Position numbers and translations under genes: made by a program. Below, piece after piece: positions 1,973 through 53,100 of a stretch of DNA of 64,000 nucleotides. The notes beneath the pieces are model-generated. The model saw only the letters and a list, made by a program, of their open reading frames with translations. It was not told where the DNA came from and ran no database searches. Source of the DNA: Guillardia theta CCMP2712 (lineage: Eukaryota > Protista > Cryptophyta); the NCBI RefSeq assembly GCF_000315625.1, contig NW_005434672.1, positions 713,374 through 777,373 of the forward strand. The letters are read 5' to 3'. Every line of letters starts with the position of its first letter. Within the stretch, counting starts at the first letter, position 1.

Positions 1973-4900
1973 ATGGTTCTCTTCCTTCTCAAGCTCACGA
2001 GCCTTCTTCTGGCACTCTCGCTGCCTTCTTGCCTTGCAAAATCAAGTGACACGAATGATGAGTTTAGCGTCGGGAGGCTTCCCGGTCGTCCATGGCACAT
2101 ATCGAGCATGGGCGACATTGCCCTGAAGAAGGTTGTCTTCGACCGCAAGCTGAAGGGATCCAGTCACTGGCCTCCAGCCTACGACAGTTTGTACGTGGTG
2201 CGAGTACCCAACCCTGAAGCAACGGTCTCTGCCTTGCAGTCAATCGCGGCGGGCAAGTACATGCACTACTACCCTCACGACACCTACCTCATGTCGCTCG
2301 ACGTTGAGCAGGCGGAGTCTGTTGCCTCCCTCCGAGGTGTGGAGGGCGTGTTCCACATGCCGGCTGAGGCAAAGACTGCCTCTAGGGCAGCACAGGTTAG
2401 AACAAAGAGGACGACTGCGACGGTGACGTTGGACGTGCAAGTGGCGGTGACTGAGCAAACGCAAGGCTTATTCCACTCCGTGCTGGCTTCCTGGAAGCAG
2501 CATCTTGTCAAGCTTGCGTCTGGTTCCTCTCAGCCTCTCCTCCGATGGGCCAGCGTGCAAAAGGTTGTGGTGGTTGTGGATCTCGCGAAGGAGGAGGCAG
2601 TTTGGGCCTGGCTTGCCAAACAGCCGCTCGTGGTGAGCATCGAGGAGCGGCCAATCTTCATCGCTAGCAACAAGTATGCGGTAAGCCCAGACCTTCCTCC
2701 CCTGCTCTGAATGACTTCTCAATCCAGTCCAAGGCTGTGCAGTCAGAGGATGGAACGCAAAACAAGCTCTGGAGCAAGGGGCTTCGCGGCTCTGGCGAGA
2801 TTATTGGGTGTGCGGATACTGGGGTGGACTATGACAGCTGTTTCTTCCGGGATTCCACGGAGCAGGTCAAGACTTGCCAGGGCCCGGGAGCTCTTGAGAA
2901 CTGCGTGAACATGAACCATAGAAAGATCGTGTCCTACCGCTTCTTCACCAACAGCTCCACCGACGTGTCCGACAAAGTAGGTGGCCATGGTACTCACGTG
3001 GCTGGCTCGATCCTTGGAAACTCCCTCTCGAACTCAACTGGCCCCTACAATGGTGCAGCACCAGATGCAAAGCTAAGCTTCGACGACGTCTCCAACGACA
3101 TCTCCGAAGCTTTTTTTTTGCCTGACGACCTCAATACGCAACTATTCCCTCACTCGTATGCGTTGGGAGCTAAACTGCATTCCGACTCCTGGGGCTCTGA
3201 TACCCCTCAGTACACGAGTAGCTCCAAGGAGATGGATCAGTTCATGTTCGACCACGACGACTTCCTCATCCTCGTCGCTGCGGGCAATACCGGGCCAGGA
3301 GCAGGAACCATCGGCTCACCCGCCACCGGCAAGAACATCCTTGCTGTGGGCGCAGGAGGCAACACGCTTGCTGCCTACGTGGAGTTGAATGGCGCCCAAG
3401 CGGAGTATGAAGATGACTACATCCCAGGAACAAGTCGAGACAGGGCGAGAACATACCTCGCCAACTTCTCGTCCCGTGGGCCAACGCCAGACAGACGCTT
3501 CAAGCCAGACATCGTGTGTCCGGGTGACAGCATCCTGTCGGCCAGATCCGACGGCAACCTCTCCTCTTTCCAGTGCTCCATCATGGTCATGAGCGGTACC
3601 TCCATGGCCACTCCGATATGTGCAGGCGCGGCAGCCCTCGTGCGCCAGTACTTCCGTGAGGGTTTCCTCTCCTCGGGAGTTCGCAACACCTCCAATGGCA
3701 TCGCGCCCTCCGCATCCTTGATCAAGGCCGTGATGATCCATGCGGGCCAGCCCATGTGGTTCCTGGAGGAGTCGACGTGGAAGTTCCCTGCGTCACTCCC
3801 TCACTTCTCGCAAGGCTTCGGACGGGTGGTTCTCGACTCGGTCCTCTACCTGGGCCCTGAGACTCCCTTCAAGCTCAAAGTGTGGGACCGCGAGGTTGTG
3901 CAGAACCAGCGCGTCAGACACTTCTGCTTCCTCGCTGCCAGTCAGTCGTCTTACTCCCGCTTTCGCGCCACCCTCGTGTGGCCAGACCCTCCTGCTCCTG
4001 TCTGGAGCAAGCTCACGCTGATGCACAACCTCAACCTCATCGTGCAGGACCCCAGCAGAGCGCTCTTCTTCGGCAACAACCTCACTGACGGCAGCAAAGA
4101 CGAAGTAAACAATTGCGAGCAAGTGACGATCGCCAACGCTAGAGGCGGCATTTACAGGGTGATGGTGGAGGGCTACGACATCCAAGGAGGCTCACAAAAT
4201 TTCTCGCTCGTCGTCACGGGGGACGGGGAGGAGGTGGAGTGTCCGGTGCAGGCCTGCCCGGGCAACTGCTCCTCTCATGGTGCTTGCAAGCTAGGCGTCT
4301 GCTCCTGCTTCATAGGCTTCCAGGGGGAGAACTGCAGCCTCCCCGCCCCTCCCCTCGTCAATTCGTCCATCTGTCACGCCATCGCCTTCGACTCCAGCAG
4401 CCCGTACTCTGGCAGTACATTTCCTGCTGCTGTTCTCCGCCCGACCCCTGTGGTCATCCAGTTCTCATCAGACGCTGACGTCTCAGGCAAAGGCTTCCTT
4501 GCCATGTTCGGGGACCCCTCGTCCCTCCCTGCCAACGAGGGGATCAACAACCAGGCGGTCTCTCTGACGATACCTGAGGGAATTGTGACGAACAGGGAGG
4601 GCACCTATCAGAACAACTTGAACAAGGTCTGGATCCTTGCGCCTCCTCTTGCTCAGCGTGTCTACCTTAAGTTCCTCGAGCTCAACGTGGAGAAAGATGT
4701 TGTCTTCATATTCGTGTACGAGTGTACGACAGCTGATTGCACCTCATTCGTACAGTTACCTGGAAGCCCCTTCACAGGCACTGCCATTCCCGACCTCCTC
4801 GTCTCCTCCACTGGTTTCATGCAGATAACGTTTGTGTCCGACAGTGGTACAACATTCTCGGGCTTCAAAGCTGTCTTCACCTCTCACCTCCATGACTGCT

Positions 4901-5355
4901 CCAGCAGCGGGCTAGTGCAGGCAAACTTTGGCCTCTTCTCCGACGGCATCGGAACGTACAGCTCCAACATGCGCTGCGGCATCGTCATCAAGCCTGCAAC
5001 CGCCTCAAGCATGCTCGTTCGGTTCCTTGAGATGAACATGGAAAAAGTCTTCGATCGCCTGTACGTGGGACAGTGTCTTCAACTTCCTCAGACAACTGAA
5101 GCAAGTCCTGCTCCCACGACGACTCCAGCTCCGACTCAAGCTTCTGTGACTTCCCCTCCACAGAGTTCACCTGCTGCTACCAGCGGAGCTCCAACAACGA
5201 CTCCCAGCTTGGTGACTTGCTGCATCGTTGGGCTCCTACTCCTCACTGGTGTCGCCGCACCCCGATAGACCTCTACCGCCCAAGAGGCTCAGCCCCTCAC
5301 TCCTCGTCGCGGGCAACATGTCAATGATAGACCTAGCCCATGTAAAAGTTACTGA
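1973..5355 (+). CDS. Secreted subtilisin-like serine protease (S8, KP-43/TagC-like) with EGF and CUB domains and a Ser/Thr/Pro-rich tail
   Basis: Signal peptide MVLFLLKLTSLLLALSLPSCLA. Catalytic motifs ADTGVD, HGTHVAG, AAGN and GTSMATP. EGF motif CPGNCSSHGAC..CSC. CUB motifs FVSDSGTTFSGFKAVF and YSSNMRC. Phase-0 intron 2681-2727. A probable last intron 5212-5268 moves the stop to 5353-5355; if unspliced the stop is at 5268. Confidence 0.9.
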
Positions 5356-6699: not shown

Positions 6700-9000
6700 T
6701 GAAGCACAAGAGAAGGTCCCTGCTGGTGCGTCGCCTGCCTTTGGAAGTGCTTCCGAGGCTCATCTCACTCAGCAAGCGCTTGCAGTACTGCAGGTGGATT
6801 TGACTGACATCCTCGACACCACTAGCCTGATCCAGGCGATCAAGCGCTACAGCTCCTTTGCGGGGACCGATGACCAAGGGTTGAGGATGCGGCAACACCT
6901 GTCACCCCTCTCTGGTCATCCTGCAGCTTTGAAGCTCTACTGCAAACATATCTTCCAAGGGGCCTTCTTGGCCGGATGCCGGATCTTCTGATTCCTGCCC
7001 TGTCAGCCATTCGTCGAGGAGGCAGATTTATTCCCCTCTCCAAGGGAGCTGATAAACCTGGTCTCCGGCCAATTGTCATCGGTTCTGCACACCGTCGACT
7101 CGCGACGAAGCTTGCGTTGGCAGGGATTCGCTCATTTCTTGACCAGCACTTCCTCTCGTCTCACCCTCGAGCGATTCAGTTCGGACTCGATCGAGATGCC
7201 ACTGTTTGAAGTTCTCGCAAACCGCGTCAGCGCTCCTGCCCCTTCACGCTCGCGGTGATGATGAGGATGTTGCCAACCCCACAGAACTGGTGAGTTTGGA
7301 TGCAAAGAACGCCTTCAATTCTAAGCCGCTCTCTTCGATGCAATCGAGGGACGTGCGAGTCGTAACTAGTTTGATGGGAGCATCAGCGAAGGTGCAAGCT
7401 TGTCATCTTCCGAGCCTCTTCGGTTGTTCGCCTCCTACCTCTCCAGCTACTATGGAGACTCCGCCGCTTTCATAAGGATCAGTCAGCTTCCGTTCAGTGT
7501 ACCTCGGGCATCTGTCCGACGGTCAGGGCGATGTCCCCTCCATCGTACTCTTCTGCCACAGCATCCACCCACTGCTCCTCCATGAGTCGCAGACCTATTC
7601 CCCTCTGTTCGAGTCTTGGCCTACGCTGACAACGTCGTCATTGTAGGGCCACTCGAGGATGCCGTTGCAGCTACGTCCGCTATGAAGAAGTACATGTTGG
7701 CCGATCTGCAGCTTGCGATTCAACCTCGCGAGTCGAAAGTTTACATTACCTCCTGGCACCAACACCCTGATCTCTCGCAGCTGAAGAAGAGCCTTAAGCG
7801 CCGTCTCAAGACTCAACTTCTTCACTTCGAGGTCGTCACTGGCGGGATTCGGATGGTTTTCATGCTAGTCAGCTCCGAGCGAAGGTCTCCACCCTCAACG
7901 AAGAGCTCTCGAAGCTCGAGCCATCTCCAGAAGCTCCGCTTCTTCCTTCAGGGGTCATCTCCGCTTCTCTCGCGAGTCCAGTCACAGATTCGTCGCTTTG
8001 ACCTCTCTGTCCACCTGGCGCTTGAGAAATACCACCGCTGGCCTTCCTCGCAGTACCTCGCCGCGCACCCCGACCTGCTAGAGTTTGCGAGGTTCAAGCG
8101 GGAGCTTCCCCACAGTCGGGGAGGGGACGAGTTCACGCCCTCTGAAGGTATACACCCCGCTGTTTACTATACCGCTATCGCGTGGTACTCTGACCAGCCC
8201 ATGTCCCGGACCTTGCCCTCTCCTCATAGCCTGGACGTTCACTGCTCGAGATCTCTCCGTGCCGCCGTGCCCAGAAGCATCCTCTGGCGACCTTCTTCGT
8301 TGAGGCGCACGACTTTGTTCATAATGCTGGAGCGATTCTCTACCGTCGTAAACTCAGAGGACCGTCGCGTGAGGACTCATGCACCGGCTGCAGATGGCGC
8401 GGGGATCCCACCTGACCCGGCTGCTGTGCCTGATGACGCAGGACGCCCCCCCGGCATATGTAGTACACATACCTGGCTTGCGCGCTCTCGTCGACTCGTC
8501 TCATGAGCACTTCATTGCTCCACCTGCGCAGCGCAATGTGACTCCTCTTGTCATGCGAGTGTTTCCTCGCCATGTGCATGCTCGCGCTGCCCTCACCGAT
8601 CAGCAGCGTGATATCCTCACCTTGCACAGCCGAAGGACGTACTCGCTCAAGTCGCAGGATAGGGTCTTGCAGTCTACCATCTTCGCTCATTTTCCTGAGC
8701 AGGACCTGAGCCACTCTCCGATGCGAGTCTCGAGCTACTATACCCTCAAGGCCTTCCCGCACCGCTATGCTCAGATGCTCGACTGCTATCTCCATGGCAT
8801 GCCGATCTGTCAGTGTCCGACGGAATTTGATGGATGTCAGCGCGAGCTCGATCCCTCCGTTGCTGCACATCATCTCCAGACCTGCAAACGCCGATCCTCC
8901 AAGCTTCCCACGGCGCATGACAACCTTACTCGTACGATTCGGTCGATGCTCAACGAAGCTGGTCTTCAGAGCGTCATCGATACAGTCGGGGATCCTCGTT
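6700..9000 (+). pseudogene. Frameshifted RT and zinc-knuckle portion of the retrotransposon ORF
   Basis: RT blocks are spread over several frames (6794-7209, 7206-7475, 7616-8506, 8379-9077). The catalytic YADD reads YADN at 7622-7633. Confidence 0.85.
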
Positions 9001-12000
9001 CTCGACGCTGTGTGCATGCAGGTTTAGCTTGTTCCTGCTTTGTTTTGCTTGAGGCACTTTTTACCTTCTGCGAGTAAAACTCAACCTCCGACTCCGATGG
9101 GGGAAACACTTCGAGCGAAATGAAGCCCCCTTAGACGCGATACCCGGAGGCAGCCGACTGACCACTGTCAGTCGAGACGGCCTGCTCCTCCGCCGCGACC
9201 TACGCTGTCCCTCACCTCTGCGAGCGAGCGCCAAAGACAGTTGGCGATTCATCAGTTCAGTGCGGGTGACCTTCATCGGGCGGTACGGGAATAAATCTGC
9301 CTCCTCGACGAATGGCTGACAGGGGGTATAAGATTTACTGGCAGGAGGTAAAAAGTGCCTCAAGCAAAACAAAGCAGGAACAAGCTGAACCGGCAGGCAC
9401 ACAGTCCACAGCGAGAAGCTGCACAAACACACACAAAACACAAGCCCGAAAAGAACCAGCACTGCTGGCACCCAGACCCGGCATCGCCAGCCCAAGCGCG
9501 AAGCCGCGCAGACAAGCAGCCGAAGGGTCAAGCAAGCAAGCAACAAGCAGCAGGAGCATGCAGGAGGAATAAAATCCCTTACTAGACGCGATACCCGGAG
9601 CGGCAGCCGACTGACCACTGTCAGTCGAGACGCCGGTCCGCTGCCGCCACAAAGCGGGCGGCCGCGGACGGAAGCCGGCGCTGCCCGGCCCGGGGGTCCG
9701 CCTGGGGCAGCGGACGGAGGGAGGCTGGACACATGAACACGGTACCGCTCGAGGTAGTCCTCCTCGCTAGCCTCGGAGTCAGCGGTAGCCAAGTCAGTGG
9801 TAGCCGCCCGTGACGGCGGCGACGCCGCGGCAATGCCCAAGGACCGGCAAGACCAGGGCAGGAATCAGAAGATCCGGCATCCGGCCAAGAAGGACCCCTT
9901 GGAGGATATGTTTGCAGTAGAGCTTCAAAGCTGCAGGATGACTGGATTTACTGGCAGAAGGTAGAAAGTGCCTCAAGCAACACAAAGCAGGAACAAGCTA
10001 AACCGGCGTGCTGATCGCCTGGATCAGGCTAGTGGTGTCGAGAATGTCAATGCAGTACTGCAAGCGCTTGCTGAGTGAGATGAGCCGCGGAAGCACTTCC
10101 AAAGGCAGGCGACGCACCAGCAGGGAACTTCTCTTGTGCTTCAGCAAGAAGATCAGCGAAAGAAGTAAGATTTACTGGCAGAAGGTAAAAAGTGCCTCAA
10201 GCAAAACAAAGCAGGAACAAGCTAAACCGGCGTGCACACAGTTCACAGCGAGAAGCGGCACAAACACACACAAAACACAAGCCCGAAAAGAACCAGCACT
10301 GCTGGCAACCGTCAGCAGACGGACCCGGCATTGCCAGAGCATGCAGGAGGAATAAAATCCCTCAGACGCGATACCCGGAAGCAGCCGACTGACCACTGTC
10401 AGTCGAGACGTCCGCTGCCGCCACAAAGCTGGCGGCCGCGGACGGAGAAAGGGCAGCCGCCGACAAGGAGCTTCTGCCAGTAAATCCTATGAGGAGCCGG
10501 CGTTGCCCGGGGGTCCGCCTGGGGCAGCGGACGGAGGGAGGCTGGACACAGGAACACGGTACCGCTCGAGGTAGTCCTCCTCGCTAGCCTCTGAGTCAGC
10601 AGAAGCCGAAACCAACACCGCCCGTGACGGCGGCGACGCCGCGGCCGAAAGATTCAGCCTTGTAGATGCCGGAGCTCAGTAGTGTCCCTCTCCAAGGGAG
10701 CTGATAAACCTGGTCTCCGGCCAATTGTCATCGGTTCCGCACACCGTCGACTCGCGACGAAGCTTGCTTTGGCAGGGATTCGCTCATTTCTTGACCAGCA
10801 CTTCCTCTCGTCTCACCCTCGAGCGATTCAGTTCGGACTCGATCGAGACGGCTCAAGCAATCAAGCAACAAGCAGCAGGAGCATGCAGGAGGAATAAAAT
10901 CCCTTAGACGCAATACCCGGTTGTTGCTTGATTGCTTGACCCTTCGGCTGCTTGTCTGCGCGGCTTCGCGCTTGGGCTGGCGATGCCGGGTCTGCTGACG
11001 GTTGCCAGCAGTGCTGGTTGTTTTCGGGCTTGTGTTTTGTATGTGTGCTTTGTTTTGCTTGAGGCACTTTTTACCTTCTGCCAGTAAATCCTATCTCTCT
11101 TGTTTGTGCAGCTTCTCGCTGTGAACTGTGTGCACGCCGGTTTAGCTTGTTCCTGCTTTGTTTTGCTTGAGGCACTTTTTACCTTCTGCCAGTAAATCCT
11201 ATCTCCCGGTGGTCCACCCTTACATTGGTAGCTCTGCCGACCTGACCAAATGGGGGGAGGTCAAGCGTCTGAGAAGATTCGCAAACATCGCGCTGCATAT
11301 GCCATGACTACTCCTCCTCGAGCGTTCATCCCTCTTGCCATCTCGACGGACGGTACCCTTGTTTGTGCAGCTTCTCGCTGTGAACTGTGTGTACGCCGGT
11401 TCAGCTTGTTCCTGCTCAGCTTTGTTTTGCTTGAGGCACTTTTTACCTTCTGCCAGTAAATCCTATAGACTTAGGGTGGTCCTTCCTGAACCAAGGAAGT
11501 TCTCGGAGCTGGTGAGGCGTCTCCCACGGTCCCTCACTGTGACGTCGGGTGCCCGGTCCGGAGAGCCTCTCGACAACACTGGGCCGGGGGTGCTTGCTGC
11601 CAGGCTGGTCCGAGCTCGCCTGCTTCCTCCCCGGCATCGGTCGGGTCACGCCGGTCCTTGGGCATTGCCGCGGCGTCGCCGCCGTCACGGGCGGCTACCG
11701 CTGACTCGGCTACCGCTGACTCGGAGGCTAGCGAGGAGGACTACCTCGAGCGGTACCGTGTTCATGTGTCCAGCCTCCCTCCGTCCGCTGCCCCAGGCGG
11801 ACCCCCGGGCAGCGCCGGCTCCTTGTCGGCGGCTGCCCTTTCTCCGTCCGCGGCCGACCGCTTTGTGGCGGCAGCGGACGTCTCGACTGACAGTGGTCAG
11901 TCGGCTGCCTCCGGGTATCGCGTCTGAGGGATTTTATTCCTCCTGCATGCTCCTGCTGCTTGTTGCTTGCTTGCTTGACCCTTCGGCTGCTTGCCTGCGC

Positions 12001-12116
12001 GGCTTCGCGCTTGGGCTGGCGATGCCGCGTCTGAGTGCCAGCAGTGCTGGTTGTTTTCGGGCTTGTGTTTTGTGTGTGATTGTGCAGCTTCTCGCTGTGC
12101 GCTGTGTGCCAGGAGG

Positions 12117-12216
12117 NNNNNNNNNNNNNNNNNNNNNNNNNNNNNNNNNNNNNNNNNNNNNNNNNNNNNNNNNNNNNNNNNNNNNNNNNNNNNNNNNNNN
12201 NNNNNNNNNNNNNNNN
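12117..12216. other. Assembly gap (100 N)
   Basis: Run of exactly 100 N inside the repeat nest. Confidence 1.
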
Positions 12217-12659
12217 GCACTTTTTACCTTCTGCCAGTAAATCCTACCCACCCCTCCTTTTTACCTTCTGCCAGTAAATCCTATACTACTCGCTGGCACC
12301 CAGACCCGGCATCGCCAGCCCAAGCGCGAAGCCGCGCAGACAAGAAGCAGCCGAAGGGTCAAGCAATCAAGCAACAAGCAGCAGGAGCATGCAGGAGGAA
12401 TAAAATCCCTTACTAGACGCGATACCCGGAGGCAGCCGACTGACCACTGTCAGTCGAGACGTCCGCTGCCGGCACAAAGCGGGCGGAGAAAGGGCAGCCG
12501 CCGACAAGGAGCCGGCGCTGCCCGGGGGTCCGCGGCTGGGGCAGCGGACGGAGGGAGGCTGGACACAGGAACTTCGGAACACGGTACCGCTCGAGGTAGT
12601 CCTCCTCCTGTTTTGCTTGAGGCACTTTTTACCTTCTGCCAGTAAATCCTACCCCCCTC

Positions 12660-13349
12660 GCTAGCCTCCGAGTCAGCGGTAGCCAAGTCAGCGGTAGCCG
12701 CCCGTGACGGCGGCGACGCCGCGGCAATGCCCAAGGACCGGCGTGACCCGACCGATGCCGGGGAGGAAGCAGGCGAGCTCGGACCAGCAGCAAGCACCCC
12801 AGTGGTGTCGAGCTCTCCGGAGGCACCCGACGTCACAGTGAGGGACGGAGACGCCTCGCCAGCTCCGCGCCGATCGTCGGGGCCACTGGAAGGGTTTTCC
12901 CCATCGGAGTCGGAGACCTCCGGCGAAGACTCCTCGGGCGACTCGACAAAGTCCGAGGAGGAGCTGTCCTCTGGCTCGAGAAGTGCTTGCGCCCGCAAGG
13001 GCGTCATGCGCCTCGCACCAGACAAGAGCGCCTCCAGCGTAAGCTGCATGGTGAGGCGCTGATAGGTGGCGGCGCGTTTGCGAGCCAAGACCTCAGCAGC
13101 AGGGCTGTCATCAGGCACGAAGTGCCGACCAAACGCCGCATCCTCAAGAGGCATCGAGCGCTGAGCAATGATGTCCGCGAGATACCAGATGAAGCGGAGG
13201 GTGTCAGGATGCAGGGTACCGTCCGTCGAGATGGCAAGAGGGATGAACGCTCGAGGAGGAGTAGTCATGGCATATGCAGCGCGATGTTTGCGGGTACCGT
13301 CCGTCGTAGTCATGGCATATGCAGCGCGATGTTTGCGAATCTTCTCCAA
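12660..13349 (-). pseudogene. Best-preserved C-terminal (RLE end plus acidic tail) segment of the retroelement ORF
   Basis: ORF 12450..13349 reads EKIRKHRAAY..FIPLAISTDGTLHPDTLRFIWYLAD..LEPEDSSSSDFVESPEE. An internal duplication of KHRAAYAMTT is present. Confidence 0.75.
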
Positions 13350-14270
13350 AGCAGGAACAAGCTAAACCTGCTTGCACACAGCGACCAGCGAGAAGCTGCA
13401 CAAACACACACAAAACACAAGCCCGAAAAGAACCAGCACTGCTGGCAACCGAACGGTCAGCAGACCCGGCACCGCCAGCCCCGGCAAGCGCGAAGCCGCG
13501 CAGACAAGCAGCCGAAGGGTCAAGCAATCAAGCGAGATGGATTTGCTGGCAGAAGGTAAAAAGTGCCTCAAGCAAAACAAAGCAGGAACAAGCTAAACCT
13601 CCTGGCACACAGCGCACAGCGAGAAGCTGCACAAACACACACAAAACACAAGCCCGAAAAGAACAGTCAGTACACGGATTTACAAAACACAGGCCCGAAA
13701 ACAACCAGCACTGCTGGCAACCAGACGCGGCATCGCCAGCCCAAGCGCGAAGCCGCGCAGACAAGCAGCCGAAGGGTCAAGCAAGCAAGCAACAAGCAGC
13801 AGGAGCATGCAGGAGGAATAACATCCCTTAGACGCGATACCCGGAGGCAGCCGACTGACCACTGTCAGTCGAGACGTCCGCTGCCGCCGCAAACTTGAAG
13901 CTGGCGGCCGCGGACGGAGAAAGGGCGGCAGCGCCGGCTCCTTGTGGGCAGCCGCCGACAAGGAGCCGGCGCTGCCCGGGGGTCACTGAGTCCGCCGGGC
14001 CTGGGTGGTGGAACGTATGCCAGCCGTGCCAGTCAGATAGCGCCGAGTGACAACTTGAAAGACTCTCCTGTACACCAAGACGACTTACGTGGCAAGGCGG
14101 CATGTAGTACGTGGGACGAAGAGTGGGCTTTCCGTCTTGCTAAGGTCCTCTCATGTCTGGATGCTTGGGTTTCACATCCTAGCATACAGTCTATCTCTCA
14201 TGTGCTCCTCAATTCTGGTTTTGTGTGCATTAAACTCGGTCTTGAGCAAAAACTTTCTTGTTACACTGGG

Positions 14271-14350
14271 CTAAGGTCAATGTGAAATCTGCGTGACCCT
14301 TTGGACTACGCTAAGGTCAATGTGAAATCTGCGTGACCCTTTGGACTACG
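14271..14350. repeat. Perfect 40-bp tandem duplication
   Basis: ctaaggtcaatgtgaaatctgcgtgaccctttggactacg occurs twice, at the junction with a retroelement copy. Confidence 0.95.
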
Positions 14351-15919
14351 GTACAAGTCCAGCAGCGGACGGAGGGAGGCTGGACCGTGGCACAGGAACA
14401 CGGTGCCGCTCGACTCGGCGAGGCCCGGTAGTCCTCCTCGCTAGCCTCCGACGGTCAGCCTGGCAGAAGGGCCGAAACCAACCGTGAACACCCGGTGACC
14501 GCGGCCCGTGACCGTACGGTCGGACGGCCGGGCGACGCCGCGGCAATGGGCCAAGGACCGGCCGGGCGTGACCCGACCGATGCCGGGGAGGAACCGATGC
14601 CGGGCAGGAACCGGTGACCAGTGAACTTGGAAGCAGGCGAGCTCGGACCAGCAGCAACTTGGGGGGGCACACCCCCGGCCCCGCGGGGCCCCGCCCAGTG
14701 GTGTCGAGCTCTCCGGAGGCACCCGACGTCACAGTGAGGGACGGAGACGCCTCAGCGAGTCGCGGCAGCTCCGCGCCGGTCGTCGGCGCCACTCGAAGAG
14801 TTGGGCCCCCATCGGAGTCCCTGAGACCTCCGGCCGCGGTCGGAAGACTCCTCCTCGCCGGGCGACTCGACAAAGTCCGAGGACTCCGGGGCAGTGTCCT
14901 CTGGCTTGCGCCCGCAACTTGGCAAGGGCGTCATGCGCCTCCGAGCGGCGGGCATCAGACAAGAGCGCCTCCACAGTCAGCTGCATAGTGAGGCGCTGAT
15001 AGGTGGCGGCGCGTTTGCGAGGGCCAAGACCTCAGCAGCCGCACGCGGCCGTCATCAGGCACCGTCGAAGTGCCGACCAAACGCCGCATCCTCAAGAAGC
15101 ATCGAGCGCTGAGCAATGATGTCCGCCAGATACCAGAAAGTTGACTCAGTCACCGTCAGTACAGCTTCTCGCTGTGCGGAACAGTGCGGCGCGTCCGGCG
15201 ATCATCCGGAGTCCGATGTGACTCAGTGTCTATCCGCCCGGCCAGCCACCACCGTCTGAGAAAGCCTGCCGCAATGAACTTGGCAACGCATCGTCCTGCA
15301 TAGGGCCAGTTGACTTTGAATGACTTTGAGTACTGTAAACAATCGGATGGGCCCCGGTGGCGGCTCGGAGCCTCGGAGCGGCCCATCGCCGGCCCGGGCC
15401 TTCCAACTTCACCGTAGTCACAAAAAGCTAGGTTTACTCAAAGCTAGGCAGTCGGCCTGCTTTGTAGGGGTAGGGGTAAGCTGTGGAGAGTGGTAGGGGT
15501 AGGGGTAAGCTGGAGCCTTCGGGAAGGTGCGGATCAGTGACTGGTAGGAAAACGTGGGGGTCATGATCAGGCGCATAGGGGGTGGGGGTTACCCTCAGAG
15601 TCTACGTCACACGTGCGACGTGACCGTCCGACGGGGTAAGGTACGGTAGTACGGTCGCCTGCCCTGTTGGGTGGTGGATGAGGTAGGGGTGGTGGTATAG
15701 GTGTCTCAAGGGGTCTCGGTTGGTCCAGGGGTAATCGTCAGTACCCTACCTTTGTTAAGACATACCCCCGTTTCAAACTACCCCACCCCTCTAAATCCCC
15801 AAGCTTGAACCTCGAATATCTCTATGTACCCCTATCAATACTACCCTTGCTGGATCACAAGCACCCCTACCACCCGACCGCACTCTTAAGCCTCGAGGAG
15901 GCCGTTCACCTCTGCCGCA

Positions 15920-17409
15920 ATGCTGCTCTCTCGCGTCGCGCTCATCGCCTGCGCGATGGCAGGAGCCAGCGCTTTTGCTCCCTCGGGTCCCGCATCCCTG
16001 TCCTCTTTCCGAGTGCTTGCTGCTGCCAGGACGAATCTTCGCCCTAAGGCTGACACCGGCAGGACTGTTGTGAGGCGGTCAGCGTTGACGATGATGGCTG
16101 CGAAGCAAACCCCGCACGGAGGAAAGCTTGTGGATCTGATGGTGAAGGACGAGGCGGAGAAGAAGAAGATCGCCTCGTCATGCCACTTTGAGCACCAGCT
16201 TACTGATCGTCAGCTTTGCGACGTAGAGCTGATCATCAATGGTGGACTTTCTCCATTGAACGGGTTCATGAACGAGGAGACCTACAAGAAGGTTGTTGAT
16301 GACATGAGGCTGCCTAGTGGTCTTCTCTTCGGCCTCCCCATCGTATTCGACACCAACCGCGATGATTTTGTTCCAGGAAAGAAAGTGTTGCTGAAGCAGG
16401 GAGACCGTGACATCGCTGTTTTCACCATTGAGGATCGTTTTAAGCCAGACAAGGTTCACGAGTGCAAGCAGTGCTATGGAGTCACAACGTTGGAGCATCC
16501 CGGTGTCTTGATGGTTTCCACTGAGCGTGGAGCTTTCTATTGTGGTGGAAGTCTTCAGGGCCTCAACCTCCCAGTCCGTGAGTTCCCTTGCAGGACTCCT
16601 GCTGAGGTTAGGACCGACCTTCCTGATGACAAGGATGTTGTTGCATTCCAGTGCAGAAATCCCGTTCATCGTGCTCATTACGAGCTCTTCACTCGCGCTC
16701 TCGATGCTCCTGAAGTCGGTCCTGAAGGTGTTGTCCTCGTGCATCCAACCTGTGGCCCCACCCAGGCTGACGACATCCCGGGAACCGTTCGCTACAAGAC
16801 ATACGTGCGCCTGGCGGAGGAGACCAAGAACCCCAGGATCAGATGGGACTACCTTCCCTACTCTATGCACATGGCTGGACCTCGTGAGGCCATCCAGCAC
16901 ATGATGATCCGCAAGAACTTCGGTTGCACTCACTTCATCATCGGCCGCGACATGGCCGGTTCCAAGAGCTCGATCACTGGCGATGACTTCTACGGTCCTT
17001 ACGATGCTCAGGTAAGCAGGGCGGGAGGAAAAGTGAGAGAGTGGAGAGAGTGACCTTGGTTCGAACAGGACTTCGCCAAGAAGCATGGTCCTGAGCTCGG
17101 AGTTACCCCTGTCCCTTCGCTCAACCTTGTCTATACGCAGGAGAAGGTACGGTGACAGTTGCGAGTGTTTGTGATGACCTATGTTGACAGGGCTATGTGA
17201 CCGCTGAACAAGCCAAGGAGGAGGGACTGGAAACTCTGAAGCTCTCAGGTACCAAGTTCAGGAAGATGCTTCGCAGGTGACCGCGTGGCTTCTGATCCGA
17301 TTGTTGAACTGATGATGTGATTGACAGCGGGGAGGACATTCCTGAGTGGTTCGCTTTCAAGTCTGTTGTTGAGGTTCTGCGTGAGGATGTTCTTGCCTCA
17401 CCCAAGTAA
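15920..17409 (+). CDS. sat: Plastid-targeted ATP sulfurylase (sulfate adenylyltransferase), Cys-rich type
   Basis: Bipartite presequence ..AGASA-FAP. Motifs PHGGKLVDL, AFQCRNPVHRAH, MHMAGPREA, GCTHFIIGRDMAG, LSGTKFRKML and IPEWF. Introns at 17012-17068, 17147-17190 and ~17278-17328. Confidence 0.96.
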
Positions 17410-24746: not shown

Positions 24747-25729
24747 CGACGCATGCAGCAAAGAATTTCCTAGTAAACATGTCATTGGGGATCTCATTCG
24801 ATTCATTCAGCACAAAAGAAGACATAGCCTGCACAGGCATCAGCTTATTGTGCTCTAAGCACGCTGGCTCCTAAGATGAAGATGTTCATGTCGTGCAGAT
24901 GATCTGGGATTGAGTTCGCTGCTACTGCAGGGCCTCAAGCATCACCAATTTGCGAAAGCCATTATCTACGTGGTTCTTCTATAATTGGTGATTGCGCTAA
25001 TCATAGTCAACACCTGAGAGCATGTCTGTCGACTAATCAACCATCAAACTAGTTTGAATAAGTGAAACTCCTGTTGCGACCTTTCTGATGCAAGTAAGCC
25101 TACCAAAGGGTCAATGATTACGCGATGGGGCTACAAGGAATTGAGTTTCTAGCGCACCATTACCATCTGTCGCAGATGATCTCTGCCTAGTGGTCAGTGC
25201 CTCCCCTCCTCCCTCCTCCCCTCGACCATCAGCCTGCTGGCACAACATTGCAACTAATATGGGGGAATGGTTCCCGACGAGCAGGGTGGGGTGATACAAT
25301 GGAGATATGGGGGTGGGGTAGCTCATCCTCGGGGTCCCTTCACACAATCTTCGATGTCATAGGGGGTGGGGCAATGGATTCAGACAGGTAGGGTAGTAGA
25401 GTTGGATAAGGTTGGGGGTAGAGGAACAAGCATGGCCTTTCTTATCGAGGGGGTAGGGGTGGAAAAGGGGGTGGTAGAAGTGTACCAGGGGTCAAGGTCC
25501 CCCAATCCCTGGCAAAGGGCGTAAATGGGAGGGGAGTATCACCCACCCCCTGCCAAAATTTGTTGGAGTGTTGGAGGTGGTGGGCGAAAATGTACTTAGG
25601 TGCTCGTCCCAACAACAGCAGGAGAAAGGAGGGGTACCATAAAATTTACCACCCCACCATACTATCCCACCCACCCTCCAGTCGTCCTACGCCTGATCGT
25701 TACATGACGGTTTCCAAAGTTCGATGCGC

Positions 25730-26160
25730 GTCGCCGCCGGCGCCGGGGCCCGGGCCGCCAAGCGGCCGGGCTGGCGCTCCGACGGGCTGAGTCTTCAAGT
25801 TCCCAACTTGAGTTAAGTTCAACTTCCGGTTGGCACCGGCCGCCCGGGCCGCGCCGCCGGCCGGGCCCCGGGCACACTGCCACTGGCCTGCCACCGTCAG
25901 TGAGAGGCCGGGCCGGCGCCGGTCGCCCGGCCCGGCCGCCGGCGGGCCCGATCGGCCGCGTGCCACTCATACTACTTCGGAGGCTCCGGGGCCTAGCCGA
26001 TGATACGGTCTATCAGGCTCTCATGTACCAGTGTGTGCGGCTCCGATTCACTGAGTCCGAGTTATTTCCGACTACTCCGACTGGCATTTTTAACTTACTA
26101 CCTTGAACTTTGAGTAAAGTTATTTCAGCCTCATTTTTAACTTAACTTTGAGTAAATGTT
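25730..26160. promoter_or_regulatory. GC-rich palindromic island with two AACTTTGAGTAAA copies, between divergent genes
   Basis: CCGG/GGCC-rich tract. TCAAGTT-CCC-AACTTGA inverted repeat at ~25795-25811. Motif copies at 26106-26118 and 26144-26156. Confidence 0.45.
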
Positions 26161-29856: not shown

Positions 29857-30982
29857 TCACCGCGCTCGATCCCCCTCCCTCGTCACCCCGAAGTAGGTCG
29901 CATAACCGTCTCGCCCAGGAAACTTCACCTCGTACTTCACCATCTCCACTGCTGGCTCGACGTGTTGGACGGGCATGGGGCTCTCCTTGCGGAGGCCGTA
30001 GAGAACGTCGCAGATGCGGAGGATGAGCGGATGCTGCTGAGTAGCGACGAACTCACTGAGGGGCATCCAGCGGCAATCACTGATCTCCTCCTCGTCCGCT
30101 GAGATCTCCAGCGTCTTCGGCACCAGCCTGCACACGACGTAGAGGTCGGACTTGCCCCATGTGAGACCATGTCGGTTCCAGAAGCAGAGGACGGAGGCAA
30201 AGTCGCAAGCTATCCCTGTCTCCTCGAACACTTCCCTGCATGCTCCTTCTTCGAAGGACTCTCCGAGGTCTAGCATGCCTCCCGGAAGCTTCCAGACCGG
30301 CGAGCTGGTCCGAGTTCTGTTCCCCGTGTACTCTTTCACGACCAGCAGCTCCCCCTTATCATTGAGAACAAAACCTGCACAGCCCACCTGATGGGTGGCA
30401 AAGTCTGGCACCTTGTCCTCCTCCCCCTCTCTCAGCCACAGCTTCAGCACCACATAGTCGTCCTTGGCATGGTGGAAGGTGAAGCCCTCGTTCGTGTTTG
30501 CGACAGCAGCAAAGCTCGACAGGGCGATGGGCAACTGGAGCCAGCATGACTTCATCTGCTCTGACTTGAGATGGCTCACGGTTGACCTCAGTCGAAGGGC
30601 AAACTGCTCCTGGGACAGGCACAAGTCTCGCAAGGAGCCTTCACGGAAATCGACCAACGCTCCCATGTAAGGCAGCTGCGACCATGGCAGGTGCGCCTCT
30701 GACGGGGCAGCAGACGTGGACATAGCCGTGCCAACTATGCCCCCTCTCAGTGCTCGGAAAGTCGAGGAGCTCCGAGTGCTGCCGATAGTCCTGCAGCGCA
30801 TGCGTCAGTGGCGCCCAACATGTACAGGCCAAGTCAAACCTGGGAGGAACGCCGCTCCGGCGAATGGAGCTGAGGCAGGAGGGTGACTTGAGCATGAAGG
30901 ACATGGAAATGAAGGCTGAGTTCTTCGATGCTCCTGACAGCGACTGAGCCATAGCCATCGCCATCGCCGCCGCTACCCCCAT
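29857..30982 (-). CDS. Nudix hydrolase, NUDT6/plant NUDX8-like, with N-terminal presequence
   Basis: GFTFHHA, ATHQVGCAGFV and Nudix box GGMLDLGESFEEGACREVFEETG. A phase-2 intron at ~30792-30839 joins ORFs 30641..30982 and 29857..30801. Confidence 0.9.
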
Positions 30983-32397
30983 GGCAGTTCTGACTCATAA
31001 AGCCTCAGTCCCGGGGGCCCCGTGCCCACCGTCCCAACCGGGCCCGACGCCGGTCCGCCGCCGGCGGGGGCCAGATAACTTCAGTCAGTGAAAGCCCAGG
31101 GCCGGATGTGGCCCTCATCCCCTCAGGTTCCCTTGAGACTTCCGAAGTTCCGGGACTCATCATGATATCTGCATGCTACTACCCCACGAGCTCAGGCTTT
31201 GGAACCCACCCCACCCCACCCCACCCCACCCCCCGCCCTCCAACTTGATCCGATCCTGGCGGCATTCATCATGGCATGCCGCACTGTGACGATGGCTCCG
31301 TAGCACGGTACCCTTCAAGGCACTGATACCATACCCACCCCCCCGCCCCACCCCCACTCCTCGGTCAGGTACCACCGACTCCCGGAGAATTCTCGGACCG
31401 GACCCCCACCCCCCTGAGGTTAGGCCGTTCAGGATTCGACTTGAGCTCAGGCCATTTTGGGCCGCTGAGGCTGAGCCACCCTACCCCCTTTACCCCCTGA
31501 TACTCCTGCGGAATCCTGGGGGTACAACTCGGATGTTTTTGGCGACCCGACATTCGCAGTTCTGGCCGCACTACTTGTAATGCCGCAGCACCCGTGACCC
31601 CACTACCCCCACCCCCCATTCCGGCTACCACCCCCATGACTGAGGCTAAAGCCTACCTGACCTGTTGCGAATACCGTAGTACCCCCGCCGCTGACATTGA
31701 ATTTGAAGTGGGAGTACCCCTTCTCGATCAGTCTTTATCACCGGTGTGGTCGAGTCACTACCCGTCACTGATATGACCATAAGCACCCCAAGTGGTAGCC
31801 GGCATACCCCCTCGCGAAGCAGATATACCACCCCTACTTGTTTCTAGATACTCCACAATCATGTCACTACCGGTCTGAGTTTCAACCACCCCCATTCCTA
31901 AAGGAAGCTTGAGGGGTGGTGATTTGGTGCTGAACCTTGTCGTCATGTCGGAGCCGCGGGGGATGCCGGGGGGCAGGAGGAGGTAGCGGTGTTTGATGCC
32001 ATGGTAGCAGGAGAGAAGGAGTAGCACACGCAGTGATGAGAAGAAGAAGGAAGGAAGGTTGCAGCAAACAACCAAGTGCCAGCGTTTAGACCTCTGGGTT
32101 GTAGGTGACAATACCTCACCAAAATAAAAGCACGTTGGATATCGCTGTTGGTTTTGTTGTAGCGAATCAAGAGAGAAGAAGGAGAGAGAAACAATGATAA
32201 AAACAAATGGACAAGAAATGAAAAAGCTTCACGCAATTCTAACAGAGTAAATATTTCACAAGGATGACTTATTGTTTGTAGGAGCAAGTAAATCACTGGT
32301 GCCCACTTTACAAGGTTTCGGATCATAGGTCATCAAAGTCAAAGTCTCGGCGTTGTCACAAAGCGAGAGCACAAGAAGGTGTGACGCAGTTGAGGCG

Positions 32398-38119: not shown

Positions 38120-40711
38120 GTGTGCTCTCCCGGATACCAGAATGACCCGGGTGAACAGGATGGTACGGACAAGGGCGTCCTCTCTCCGAGACGAGTGCTG
38201 TCCAACGTGAGCTCCTCCTTGTCACCAGAGCTACTCGTTCTCAGTTTGCTACAGATTTCCAACTCAGCTCATGCGTCGACCGAGGACGCAGAGCTGAAAG
38301 AGGTCCTGAGCGAGAACCGCTCCCCGACCCGGGAGACACGACGAGAGCTCTTCGAAGCTTCATCGATGACGTCATCGGGCATCGAGCCTTTCTTTCCCTG
38401 GTCGCCAGAAGATACTCCGAGGAAGACCCCGAAGAGGAGATCCATCCTCCTCAGCAAGAACAAGGACGTCATCGACCAGTATCGTGCCTCTTTCGATGGG
38501 TCCGACTCCCTTCCCCCGGTCCTCAATGCAAGCAAGGCGATGGTGGACGCCCTGATGCAGGAGGGAGAACTGGTAGCCCAGCTCCAACAAGACCTCAAGC
38601 AAGAGAAGATCCTGCGAAGCTCGATTCAAAGTGAGCTGGAGGGCATTCTCTCAGCTCTCGTGCAGCTCTCCGAGGACGTGGCAGACCTCGAGTCCAACAT
38701 GCCGTCGGCGCGGGAGACGGCGAGTGACAAGAGGACGCTGAACAAGCTGAGAAAGATGCTCGCTCAGCACGAGCAGCTCTTTCAGCTCCTCTGCTCTCAC
38801 GTGGAGACGAAACAAGTATTGGAATACCTCAACCAGACTGGGCTCAAGGATTCCAAAGTCTCCCGCCACAGCATCGACATCTTGACGACCGTGTCGGAGG
38901 ACGAGGAGAGCTCAGAAGACAAGGAGCTCGGGCAGAACCTCTTCCTCGTTGTCAAGCTGCGGCAGGTGCAGGCTGCTCTTCCCCAGCTGATAATCCAGCT
39001 CACCCTGGAGATGCAGGAGCTTGATGCTGCTCGGTCGGAGGCTGAGGCTCTTCGACGTACCGCCGACTCGTGCTGGGTGCGCGAGCAAGCGGCAATGAAG
39101 AGGATCGAGGAGCTGGAGGTGAAGAGGATCGGGGGATGTCAGCAGGCCTGACGGCAGGGCAGGCAGAGAACAAGGAGCTGAACCAGTTCACGGAGCAGAT
39201 GGCTCAGGCCCACACGCGACTCACTGCAGGAGTCCAAGAGCTCCAGGAGAAGCAGAAGAAGATGGTTCCTCGTGAGCGCCTGGACGAGGTGACACTGCCG
39301 TCTGGTCCTCTGCCTCTCCCCGCTGCTGCTGCTGCTACCCTCCCACTGATGCGCTCCCTCCTCCTTCTCCCGCAGGTCCTTGAAGAGCTGGAGGAGATGA
39401 AGACGGAGCAGCAGACGATGGTCCCCCACCTCGACGCGCTGCTGAGGGAGCTGGAGGAGCTCAAGGGCGAGCGAGACAAGATGCAGCAGAAGAGCGAGCA
39501 GGTGACTTGCGCATCCGAGGGGGGGAAGGGAGAGGCTGAGAGCGAGTGGCAGGAGCGAGCGCTTGCGCTCTCGGAAGTGAAGGCCCTCAAGGAGGATGCG
39601 GAGGAGATTCAGGCGGAGCTGCATCAGCACATGGTGGCCGTGCAGGAGGAGGGCAGGAAGTTGGAGGAGAAGCCTGAGGAGGGAGGCGGGGAGGAGTCGA
39701 AGGAGCAGGCGTTCGACCTGATCGTGGAGGAGGTGCTGCAGGAGCAGGGCTGCATTTACGATGGTATCCGAGAGAAGCTGGACGCTATCCTGCAGCGGTA
39801 CAAGGCGATTGGAGAAGAGATGGAGGAGGCGAAGAGGAGGGAGGCAGAGCTGCAGGACAACGTGGGCAAGAGCTCGGAGGTGAAGACCCTGGAGGATGAG
39901 CTCGAGTACCTGCGCGGCCGCAACGAGGAGCTGCAGGCGGAGCTGAGCTCCACCAGCCAAAGGTGTCAGGCGCTGCAGGAGAGCAGCGAGCTCCGGCTGC
40001 ACGAGCTGAAGAGAGAGGCGTTCATGCTGAGCAGCCAGAAGATGGAGGAGATGGAGAAGTTGCACTCGGAGGCCTACGATGTGCTTACCAAGAGGATCGA
40101 GTTCCTTCAGGAGGTACAGGAGCACCTCCCCCTCCTCCTCTCCCCATCTTCTTCCTACTCTCCTCTCCTCTCCTCTCCTCTCCTTTCTTGTCACCCTGAC
40201 AGCGGGATTTGCGCAGGAGCTCGCTGAGAAGGGAGAAGACATCAACGAAGACTCGCTCCTATGCGACACCCCACTGGTAACCTCCTGTAACCTCCCCCTT
40301 CCCTCCCCCTTCCTTCCTTCTTTCCCTCCCTCATCTGACCTTGAACCTTGTCAGGGTGAGGTCTGGTTCTCGCCAAGGAAGAGGAGGAAGGAGGCTCCCC
40401 CATCGCCTCCATCGGCCAAGAAGCAGCTCTTCGACGAGCAGGAGCAGGTGAATCATCGCGGCTGCTCCTTTCCTCTCCTCATCCTGCTGCAGCTCCTTAC
40501 GGTCACTCCCTCGCCACATTCGCAGCTGTTCACGAGCAGGAGACTCTTCCTCCCCATCTTCATGGCCGTCCTGGTGATCGCTGCTGCTCCTTCCTCCGTT
40601 GCCCCTCACACGTTCATCAGGCACTTCTCCTCCTCCCCCTTTTCAGCGGGCCAGAAGCCTCGCAGCTTCACCCGCTCATCTTGTGACCCTCATGATGTTT
40701 CAAGCTTCTAA
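38120..40711 (+). CDS. Long coiled-coil protein with a hydrophobic segment near the C-terminus (start uncertain)
   Basis: E/K/L/Q-rich heptads across ORFs 38120 and 39070. S/TP-basic motifs TPRKTPKRR and SPRKRRK. Hydrophobic LFLPIFMAVLVIAAA. Confidence 0.65.
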
Positions 40712-41435
40712 CGGACATGTAAACTCAAGTAAAACTTCTTCTTGCATCACAATCCGATCGATCACCTCGTGCTGACTTACTAAGTTACTATGACAAGTGC
40801 CTGAGCCCGGGCCGGCACTGAAAGTTCGGAACCCGGCCGGGCCGGTCGGACTCACGGTCGGACGAGAGGTTCACCGCGGCCCGGGATAGTCCGACCGAAA
40901 AAAAAAAGAGCGGGGATGAGGGTGCCCATGGTGGGACGGATCTAGTGAGGATCTACATGCATGAATTCTTTACTCATGAATGCTGGAAGATGGGGGGGGG
41001 GGGATCGAAGAGAGAGGAAGAGGAAGGACAGAAGCCGGTAGATGGAGTCAAGGGGAGGAGGAGAGATGGAGAGAGGCGAGAAAGATACAACGAGTGAGGA
41101 GATGACGGAAGAGGGGAGGCGGGGAGGAGTAGAAAGGGTTGAGAGGGAGAGACGGGTCAAGGCGAAGAGAGAAGAGAAGGAAAGGTAGATGATTTTCAAT
41201 CATGGTGCACGGTGCTATGGCAAAAATCAGGAACAGGAACTAGGAGCAATGAAGACGTCATGACTATATGTTTCAGGGTGGATGTAAATTTGCGCAAGCA
41301 TGTTACTGAGAACCCTCGGGACCTTGTTGGTAACCCCCTCCTCTGGAGATTACAAAGGTCTTACCTCGAACAGGAATTTATGGCACAAAGCCTGACCAGC
41401 TGAAGAGATACCGTGAGCTGATTCAATCAGGCGTG

Positions 41436-50959: not shown

Positions 50960-52593
50960 CTAATCCTTTGGGTCAATGATTCCAGCATCTGAGATCTTCA
51001 CAAAAAATTAGCTATCAAAAGCAGGAATTCTGATTTTTTTTGCATACTTGATATGAAGCTTCCGCTTCCGGTTGCGATGGCGAGTCCACAACCTTGCAAA
51101 TTCTGCAATCTCCCCTACCTTTCTTGAGCTCAAGACGAGTTGTAGAGGCATGCGCCAGCACGTGACCTCCAACTGACACATGGCTGTGAGTTTCATTGAA
51201 TGCGAAACATTGCACAATACCTGGCTTTTTGGGATCGGAGACGAAAGTCATTCCTCCGTCGGGATTGCTCATCACTTGATTGGTTATCAAGACCGCTACG
51301 TTGAATTCTTCCGCCATCTTTGTAATTTTGCTGAGCATTTGACCCAACGATTGCTGTCTTGCAGATAGCTCTCCTCGACCTACATAATCAACACGAAACA
51401 GCGACTGCGGTGAAAGGATTAGTCCAACATCACAACTCGGAATTCTCAAAGGAATCTTTACCGTCATGCTATCAATTATAAGGATAGCGAATGGCCCTTC
51501 CTCCATCATGATTGCTGCTAGATCTCGAATCATATTCATCTGATGGTCCGTATTGTACGCTCGAGCAATAAGCAAATTGTTCAGCACTGATTCACAGTCG
51601 ACACCGAACCTTTCAGCAATAGGTGCAATTTTTTCTACGGCCATCGTGTTGATCACAGCAAAATTATAGTTCAACATTCTCACCAGGTCGGAAAGCACCC
51701 TTTGAACATTGGTCAGCGTCAAAACCATGGAATCGCTGTAAGCCTACCTCGGTATCGATGATGGCCACTTTACCTTCCCCGCCACCATGCTGCGCTGGAA
51801 GCTAAGAAAAGGAGATCAATCATGATCGAGTTTTTTCACAGAACATGTTGCTTGTACCATTGCTGTCACGGCAAGGGTGTGGACCCATTGTGTTTTTCCA
51901 GTCCGAAACTCACCATAAATTTCTGTGATGCTGGAGCTCTCTAAACCGCCACCCAATAAAGCGTCAAGACCCTTGACTCCTAAATTGACGTCAAACTATT
52001 GAAAAGTATTCAAACCATGCTCGTTCCTGTTGTGATCTTCTTGATTCGCTTTCGAAGATGCAACGCTTCGACCCCTGTCTTGAATGAAAAAGACTGAAAT
52101 GAAAAAACACATAGTCAGCATCGTAAACAGTCATTCATGGGATTTGACCTTTTCTTTCTGGATTGCTTCGAGAACTTTGTCAATCTTCGCTTCCGTGATA
52201 CCTTTGATGAGGAGAAGATTCTTCTTGACGGTGTACAGAACAGATTCAACCTGGGCAGCAGAATGCGATTTACAATTTTTCAGACATAACATTGTATTAA
52301 GGTATGTACGGTATGATATCCCGCATCTTTGAATTTGTTGACATCTGTCTTTGTAATCTAGCAACATTACAGATAAGTGGGTATCAAAAAATCATAGCTG
52401 GGAGGATGACTTACCCCGTGCTTTGTCACCACCTCCAGGTCCTGAAAACAAAGTAAGGATTCATAGTATTGTAAAAACATGCATGAAGAAACAATTCAGG
52501 ACACTTCCACATAACATGAATTTGCCTTACCAGGTATGGGCTCTCGCTAGCAGCGGTGGCATGGCCAGAAGCCGATTGTGCTTGTGCTTGCAT
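50960..52593 (-). CDS. DMC1: Meiotic recombinase DMC1
   Basis: IKGITEAK and Walker [33 protein letters not shown] and [18 protein letters not shown] use DMC1-type rather than RAD51-type residues. Many micro-exons. Confidence 0.88.
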
Positions 52594-52729
52594 AGTTCAG
52601 GCGGGGCCACAAACTTTTGCGCGCCAACTGTTTCGCGGGTCGTTTTTATAGACCGTACAGTGTAATCAGGCAACGCCAAGCCTATATCTAGCATCAGGAC
52701 ACCTGTCAGTGTGTCCTGTCCTCGCTCTT

Positions 52730-53100
52730 CGCTGACACCGGGCCCACCGTGATCACCTGACAGGCCTCACTCACTGTCGCAGGCCTGGCAACAGCGGCGG
52801 GGCCGGGCCGGGCCGGGTGCGTGGCCCCGGGGACTCCGAAGATCCGATCGGATTGAGTCGTGCCGCGTACTGATCACTGACCACTCAGTGACTGCCAGGA
52901 CTCTGCCGCGGGGCTGTGACTGAGCCTTCAGACGGCCTCAGGTGAGCGCCACGGACGCCGGTGCCATGATGCACTCGGAGCCTCCGCTGCGCGCCCCGCC
53001 CCCCCGGGCCTCAGCGGCCCCTGAGTCTCAGCCGCCGGCGAGCCGGCCCGGGCCGTCGCCGTCCGACCGGGACGGTCCGATCAGCATCCGTCCGACACAT
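52730..53100. promoter_or_regulatory. GC-rich palindromic island upstream of DMC1
   Basis: GGCCGGGCCGGGCC, ATCCGATCGGAT and CACTGA/TCAGTG words. Confidence 0.4.

Follow-up and report, generated by a model that had tools for sequence, protein, structure and literature searches.

P nucleotides of V(D)J coding joints and the excision footprints of hairpin-type transposons are palindromic additions at the sides of a break, the P nucleotides being even and spacer-free, and fungal repeat-induced point mutation (RIP) changes C to T in all copies of a repeat. Quasipalindrome and short-range template-switch mutations, known from Escherichia coli, yeast assays and great-ape genomes, likewise add short inverted copies of nearby sequence, by which small palindromes are created or completed; the cause is taken to be brief copying of a different strand by a polymerase, and in yeast such mutations have been tied to high transcription (PMC7202029, PMC3820800, PMC7954356, PMC8794818). 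Polymerase theta and synthesis of the SD-MMEJ type also leave short flank-copied insertions, direct or inverted and sometimes made in several rounds; the inverted ones start from 1-3 base pairs that close a loop of about 6 bases, and deletions usually accompany them (PMC5728401, PMC11292364, PMC7165422). Fold-back inversions at yeast double-strand breaks are templated inverted duplications of 5-34 bases in which one break end is extended by a polymerase and the other is joined, and at the one engineered break in question they require a natural inverted microhomology with a 41-base loop (PMC11724301). DNA repair and replication are known to yield fold-back and template-switch insertions (PMC11724301, PMC11292364, PMC5728401, PMC7954356, PMC3820800).

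We analysed a 64-kb window (C2:713374-777373, the whole stretch of 64,000 nucleotides, whose coordinates are used throughout) of the Guillardia theta genome, in which a retroelement fragment is laden with short insertions, many of which make palindromes. Compared with the template-switch systems, the net change at this locus is almost always a plain insertion, 3-5 bases long and with a new G or C as pivot, and most events need no prior inverted repeat; there are about three times as many of them as substitutions, gathered in islands, and a comparable density is absent from the cited papers. Whereas polymerase theta pairs bases across a loop, the arms here are one new base apart, deletions are rare and there is no excess of templating within 60 bases. 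The yeast fold-backs start from a single engineered break, whereas hundreds of sites are affected here, in 3-5-base units with a one-base spacer. Unlike P nucleotides or hairpin-type excision footprints, the insertions show no enrichment of even palindromes and no target duplications. Four features set this locus apart from the systems compared: the spacer is a single G or C, deletions are almost absent, the insertions are dense and they are confined to islands. A full-text search of the literature on Guillardia and other cryptophytes, with most subscription journals outside its scope, returned no description of the pattern.

Insertion load of the retroelement fragment

The reporter for these events is a high-copy element. 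Its segment at 12660-13200, which is a cleaner copy of the focal segment and part of a 299-aa minus-strand open frame, has more than 40 copies that are 97-99% identical in the 87-Mb, 669-contig genome; a copy search with this segment gave 383 first-look candidates, and the 40 that were scored were 97-100% identical. Because there are so many near-identical copies, the family is young and the ancestral state of each copy can be read from its sisters, and the proposal of the first-pass annotation (made from the letters of the DNA) that the transposon acts as a reporter held up. The 798-aa and 872-aa frames of a fuller copy gave weak matches to RVT_1 (28.2 bits against a Pfam cut-off of 29.6), and the element was classed as a retroelement from these matches, just below the cut-off, together with the high number of near-identical copies.

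Positions 8000-15140 of the window are a cluster of fragments of this one family in both orientations. Short fragments form a scrambled mosaic with repeated internal modules, again in both orientations, in this cluster and at L032, L052, L053, L054, L059 and L060, and such mosaic clusters were found on several contigs. A run of 100 Ns (a scaffold gap) lies within the cluster at 12117-12216. Terminal tag units of about 45 bases that end in CTGCCAGTAAATCCTA recur at 11078, 11186, 11450, 12231, 12268 and 12636 on the plus strand and at 9329 and 10166 on the minus strand, and a tag with the same ending was also present in copies L037, L032, L052, L055 and L056. Pieces of the tag, 7-22 bases long, are inserted at varied sites in copies of the same family, sometimes with a short target duplication. 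These inserts resemble retro-insertions with extreme 5' truncation, or template jumps, and form a second kind of insertion, separate from the palindromic kind.

The focal fragment (14357-15137, minus strand, truncated at 15137) carries 31-35 insertions that amount to 194-207 bases. The references for this count were the closest natural copies (L018 and L037) in place of a family consensus, and the alignments were global. Against L018, the closest genomic copy, the alignment had 569 matches, 10 mismatches, 35 insertion gaps (207 bases) and 11 deletion gaps (29 bases), with one clear deletion of 11 bases. Against an L037-type subfamily copy, which is nearer around 14467-14510, there were 31 insertion gaps (194 bases). 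The earlier reading that the copy differs mainly by short insertions was thus borne out, with 31-35 gaps against about 10 substitutions (roughly a threefold ratio) and the one clear deletion. Most inserts were 1-13 bases long, with one of 23 and one of 39; their G+C content was 74% compared to 67% in the remainder of the copy, and they were distributed over its whole length, more sparsely in the final 200 bases. When 38 clean copies were aligned with the focal copy by MAFFT, fewer than 10% of them had bases in the columns that were scored as insertions.

The first-pass annotation had judged the inserts against the 12660-13200 copy. Most of them stand, but around 14467-14510 a few consist in part of inherited sequence that a subfamily has in common, for example CCGAAACCAAC, and discounting these lowers the count from about 35 to about 31. 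It is extremely improbable that the inserts as a whole descend from an older, divergent subfamily of the element. Part of 14467-14510 is indeed common to copies of the L037 and L059 types; however, the best genomic match to the focal copy does not exceed 83% identity over query bases 305-748 (the first 304 bases matched only as short pieces), and three 24-base words that span insert junctions each occur once in the 87-Mb genome with up to two mismatches allowed. The genome search found the inserts of the focal copy in no other copy, and they are not common to a subfamily at other loci. The substitution divergence of the focal copy also speaks against an old subfamily: it was 1.7% from the reference copy, compared to 0-3.3% among the sampled copies. 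In this family sample (76 copies or fragments of the segment, the focal one included), 33 private insertions (204 bases) were counted in the focal copy compared to 0-7 in the 75 others. Its substitution divergence is ordinary and its insertion load is exceptional.

The inserts were also present in independent public data. A 238-base contig from run X4 (a lake water metagenome of 2024) covered 14307-14544 without a gap and with one C>T difference, spanning about 10 insertions. Run X1 (2021) covered 14812-14925 at a depth of 30-40, which is below single-copy; its depth was 71 on the unique flank and in the thousands on stretches common to clean copies. No indel differences were reported at the covered focal stretches in these data, and clean copies account for the joints in which 39 or 36-45 bases are skipped. 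The read support takes the form of contigs, and the organism's own runs had no contig across 14413-14526. That gap in coverage, together with the N run in the same cluster, would be expected if the inserts were an artefact of assembly or base calling, made where a GC-rich repeat region close to a scaffold gap has poor coverage; the gapless X4 contig, the X1 coverage and the recurrence of one 20-base insert word at 29 places in the genome (up to two mismatches, always in similar GC-rich stretches, compared to 0-1 for a control word) contradict this, and we consider an artefact highly improbable. The insertions are real, derived and private to this copy. The X4 contig, nearly identical to a copy-private stretch, was found in a freshwater metagenome, and it comes either from the same strain, from a very close relative or from carry-over between libraries.

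Odd palindromes with a G or C pivot

The four examples on which the first-pass annotation was built were all recovered. A perfect 12-base palindrome (14510-14521) lies in a 13-base insert and can be built in four steps, each consisting of a G or C plus the reverse complement of the adjacent 2-3 bases. A perfect 14-base palindrome (14677-14690) lies in a 23-base insert, which is beyond the size range tested below. An 8-base insert (14914-14921) gave CAA-C-TTG-G-CAA, two overlapping odd palindromes with C and G as pivots that correspond to two such steps, and the alignment confirmed a gain of GGCCG at 14560. In addition to these, an 11-base odd palindrome with a G pivot (14855-14865) was completed by a 3-base insert (14856-14858) between outer arms TCG and CGA that already existed, and here the locus does resemble a quasipalindrome correction. 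A pre-existing imperfect inverted repeat was clear at this site; most other units require just 2-4 copied bases, and few of them are single-step events. The 39-base insert (14590-14628) begins as a tandem copy, with one mismatch, of the 17 bases at 14577-14593, repeated at 14594-14610, and no source was assigned to its remainder.

Secondary examples elsewhere in the cluster were also present in the alignments. An 8-base insert in the otherwise clean copy region gave GAA-C-TTC-G-GAA (12568-12580), a 6-base insert gave CTT-G-AAG (13890-13900) and insertion gains were present at 13450-13490. The reverse-strand copy at 11500-11940 had seven gaps (27 bases) clustered near one end at 11540-11600, where CCAG-C-CTGG and GAGAG-G-CTCTC are read on the minus strand, and seven private insertions were counted over 11504-11802.

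Of maximal palindromes with arms of at least 3 bases, the clean copy has 12 odd and 13 even ones and the focal copy 36 odd and 20 even ones. The pivot of the 36 odd palindromes was G in 20, C in 12, A in three and T in one. Across insert junctions we counted 21 odd palindromes compared to 10.6-15.1 in three controls (P = 0.0015-0.024). We expressed the pattern as a rule in which a new G or C is added with the reverse complement of the adjoining 2-4 bases, iterated and tested by exact stepwise removal on inserts of 2-13 bases (19-24 inserts, the 23- and 39-base inserts being left out). The rule exactly reduced 8 of 24 inserts (56 of 126 bases), including inserts of 13, 13, 10 and 8 bases in 2-4 steps each, compared to 2.35 ± 1.3 in composition-matched controls, and none of 200-300 controls reached 8. 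When the real inserts were permuted among the real sites the mean was 3.26 (P = 0.002), and when they were placed at random sites of the focal copy it was 2.64 (P below 0.002); a control with reversed inserts was uninformative because several short inserts are identical when reversed. The rule also accounts for 10-17% of control inserts, and its decomposition paths are non-unique. An A/T-pivot operation fitted none of the 24 inserts, and copying of an arm alone beside an existing pivot fitted four of 24, which was not significant. By eye, over 16 rule steps, the identity of the pivot bore no consistent relation to the original neighbouring base. The same rule fitted private inserts in other, non-island copies of the element (7 of 33 compared to 1.45 in controls). 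A raised local rate and an odd-palindrome signature with G/C pivots are shown for these insertions.

The first-pass annotation had supposed that the inserts are templated by inverted copying of their flanks, in the manner of fold-back synthesis by polymerase theta. This stands for the immediately adjoining bases, to which the odd-palindrome rule applies, and fails at longer range, since inverted matches within 60 bases of inserts of at least 5 bases covered 51 bases compared to 54 in shuffles. Long-loop fold-back was rejected as a general explanation on this result. Direct matches over the same range were in slight excess (65 compared to 56 bases, P = 0.017), and this excess is due to the one 17-base tandem copy at 14594-14610. 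The folding of DNA at 14380-14700 (z = -0.94, compared to +0.62 for the clean counterpart) indicates that the insertions form no larger hairpin. A clear exception lies outside the interval that the annotation had described, in an adjoining fragment of the same element, where a 23-base insert (13923-13945) contains at 13928-13945 an exact reverse complement of 13958-13975. Separated from its source by 12 bases, this 18-base inverted copy has the classical form of a fold-back templated insertion, and it fits polymerase theta well.

The annotation's other analogy, to P nucleotides, fared no better. On this model, symmetric hairpin-sealed breaks are opened off-centre and filled in to leave palindromic additions, and many inserts are indeed palindromic with their flank, two of them as the perfect even palindromes at 14510-14521 and 14677-14690. 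The model predicts spacer-free even palindromes, however, and these were not enriched across insert junctions (8 compared to 6-8 expected), an even-palindrome operation fitted 2 of 24 inserts compared to 2.9 in controls (not significant), and the 12-base even palindrome is also buildable from four odd steps. We regard this model as unlikely. A hairpin with a one-base tip is made in hAT-type cleavage, and a variant of the model with such a tip would merge with the explanation that we favour below.

Cut-and-paste DNA transposons of some superfamilies leave excision footprints in which short inverted additions lie beside a target duplication, and the clustering of the insertions would agree with repeated insertion and excision of an element that favours the island. 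Such an origin is very unlikely, as no target-site duplications were found, a tandem-duplication operation fitted none of the 24 inserts (and 2 of 33 in other copies), the inserts have no terminal bases in common and their 3-5-base units are too short to hold both a duplication and a footprint.

Palindrome-rich islands

Across the 64-kb window, odd palindromes with a G or C pivot reached 2.2-4.8 times their first-order Markov expectation in eight discrete blocks (1501-2000, 14001-15500, 25501-26000, 31001-31500, 40501-41000, 52501-53500, 57501-58000 and 61001-61500) and were near expectation elsewhere. Even palindromes numbered 907 compared to 886 expected window-wide and were slightly raised in the islands. 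The focal copy sits in the second island, and its flanks had the highest density of G/C-pivot odd palindromes among the sampled copies (34 per kb compared to 3-20 for the others). On whether insert density rises near GC islands, a check that the first-pass annotation proposed, the focal island copy is extreme, but over 70 copies insertion load and flank palindrome density were weakly correlated (Spearman 0.20, P = 0.10), because the focal copy alone lies in an island. The effect of location within the family rests on this one island copy.

The surroundings of the copy carry the same signature. The palindrome-rich flank at 15138-15520 uses the same vocabulary of words as the inserts, and the right flank as a whole (15138-15900) occurs nowhere else in the genome. 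Just left of the focal copy lies a copy of a second high-copy repeat family (14009-14308) with an insert of the CAA-C-TTG type near 14050, while its AT-richer core (14140-14265) is free of inserts. The second-family copy also contains an exact 40-base tandem duplication (14270-14349). When the whole island was aligned to the element with cheap insertions, the score was not above that of shuffles. A 74-base stretch (15253-15326) was, however, collinear with the element module at 11266-11312 through insertions only, with a score of 34 compared to 22 ± 3.5 in shuffles and 16-26 for other islands (P about 0.007). This stretch may be a further, overwritten module of the retroelement, and the island could be element DNA of greater age in which overwriting has gone further.

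These surroundings bear on the possibility that the copy was born hypermutated, through error-prone reverse transcription with many template jumps in a single retrotransposition event. Reverse transcriptases readily switch templates, the element encodes a reverse transcriptase (by its weak RVT_1 match) and the low-rate, rule-type private inserts in other copies could date from the birth of each copy. Against this, the signature extends to the unique, non-element flank and to seven other islands, the neighbouring copy of a second repeat family has the same kind of insert, the multi-step nested inserts require successive events, and one of 76 copies or fragments, the one in the island, is affected at this level. 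We therefore think that an origin at birth is quite unlikely. Each of the rival explanations weighed here and above is contradicted by at least one test.

As in RIP, a transposon copy is heavily mutated here while its substitution age is ordinary. RIP differs in that it strikes all repeated copies with point mutations, whereas the changes here are insertions that load one of the 76 copies or fragments heavily and extend into unique DNA. A repeat-directed genome defence of the RIP type was rejected on these grounds, namely the single heavily affected copy and the signature in unique island DNA.

Island 14001-15500 lies 400-1500 bases 5' of the ATG of a downstream gene on the plus strand, the first open frame of which (15920-17053) we take from its translation to be an ATP-sulfurylase-like protein with an N-terminal signal. 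The islands at 1501-2000, 25501-26000, 31001-31500, 52501-53500 and 57501-58000 are also mostly 5' of genes, and the genes near islands include a subtilase (2737-5268, plus strand), a NUDIX protein (29857-30801, minus strand) and a Rad51-like protein (51015-51728, minus strand) besides the gene from 15920. This 5' position was not better than chance in a compact genome, as assessed without an annotation, and a link between islands and promoters is possible. By analogy, the association of template switching with transcription in yeast could fit an island on the promoter side of a gene.

A proposed short-range inverted-copy process

The explanation that we favour, and hold to be reasonably probable, is that the copy has been overwritten by repeated short-range inverted-copy insertion in the island, through turn-back or template switching of a polymerase. 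A retroelement fragment would have ended up 5' of a gene, in an intergenic island rich in G+C and in palindromes, and then been hit repeatedly. Each event would add a new G or C and, after or before it, the reverse complement of the adjoining 2-4 bases, and nested, repeated events would give rise to longer palindromes and to the words typical of islands. At a break end or a stalled fork, a DNA polymerase may turn back over a very short distance or switch to the opposite strand; it would add one base, copy 2-4 bases of that strand in reverse and return to resume synthesis, which would make this a form of template-switch or fold-back synthesis. A simple intramolecular hairpin cannot have a loop of one base; the template would then be another strand (across the fork or in the partner end), or the intermediate would be a hairpin that an enzyme closes with a one-base tip. 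We infer the enzyme, the turn-back and the sequence of events. Such a process would run at a low rate genome-wide and at least 10 times more strongly in islands.

The first-pass annotation had described a site-restricted process. The restriction applies to the rate (33 private insertions compared to 0-7 in other copies), but the kind of event is general, because the same rule was found in other copies, in another repeat family, in the words of the unique flank and in other islands. The process is therefore genome-wide in kind, acts after insertion of the element and is at least 10-fold more intense in this island. The sequence agrees equally with the breakage and repair that the annotation inferred and with a template switch during replication. 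Counting against the explanation, only 8 of the 19-24 inserts fit the rule exactly.

A polymerase-theta-like (POLQ) gene is encoded in the genome (C21:619102-623302, minus strand): a 1272-aa frame matches POLQ_helical (E = 5e-40), and further downstream on that strand lie matches to DNA_pol_A (family-A polymerase). Together with the fold-back insertion at 13928-13945 this is a further likeness to polymerase-theta repair, although the inverted insertions of that enzyme favour loops of about 6 bases (PMC11292364). The predicted gene speaks for the presence of such an enzyme and does not imply a role in the inserts. At least four further family-A polymerase loci were found (on C61, C7, C91 and C120).

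More tentatively, the islands might be written by a dedicated or highly stereotyped insertion process. This would take the form either of enzyme-made hairpin ends with a one-base tip or of polymerase U-turns at G:C pairs, at forks stalled near promoters. If true, DNA that lands in an island, transposons included, would be made palindrome-rich faster than the substitution rate, by a mutational mode that has no description in any organism.

Neutral DNA normally decays through substitutions and deletions, whereas here a stretch of known ancestry has gained about one-third of its length by some 30 or more tiny insertions that follow a simple reverse-copy rule, with only about 10 substitutions over the same time. 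The locus offers a natural in vivo system with a built-in reporter for template-switch and fold-back synthesis, and it calls for caution in alignment-based dating of repeats and in gene prediction near islands. If the process is general, it would explain the origin and growth of the GC-rich intergenic islands of this alga.
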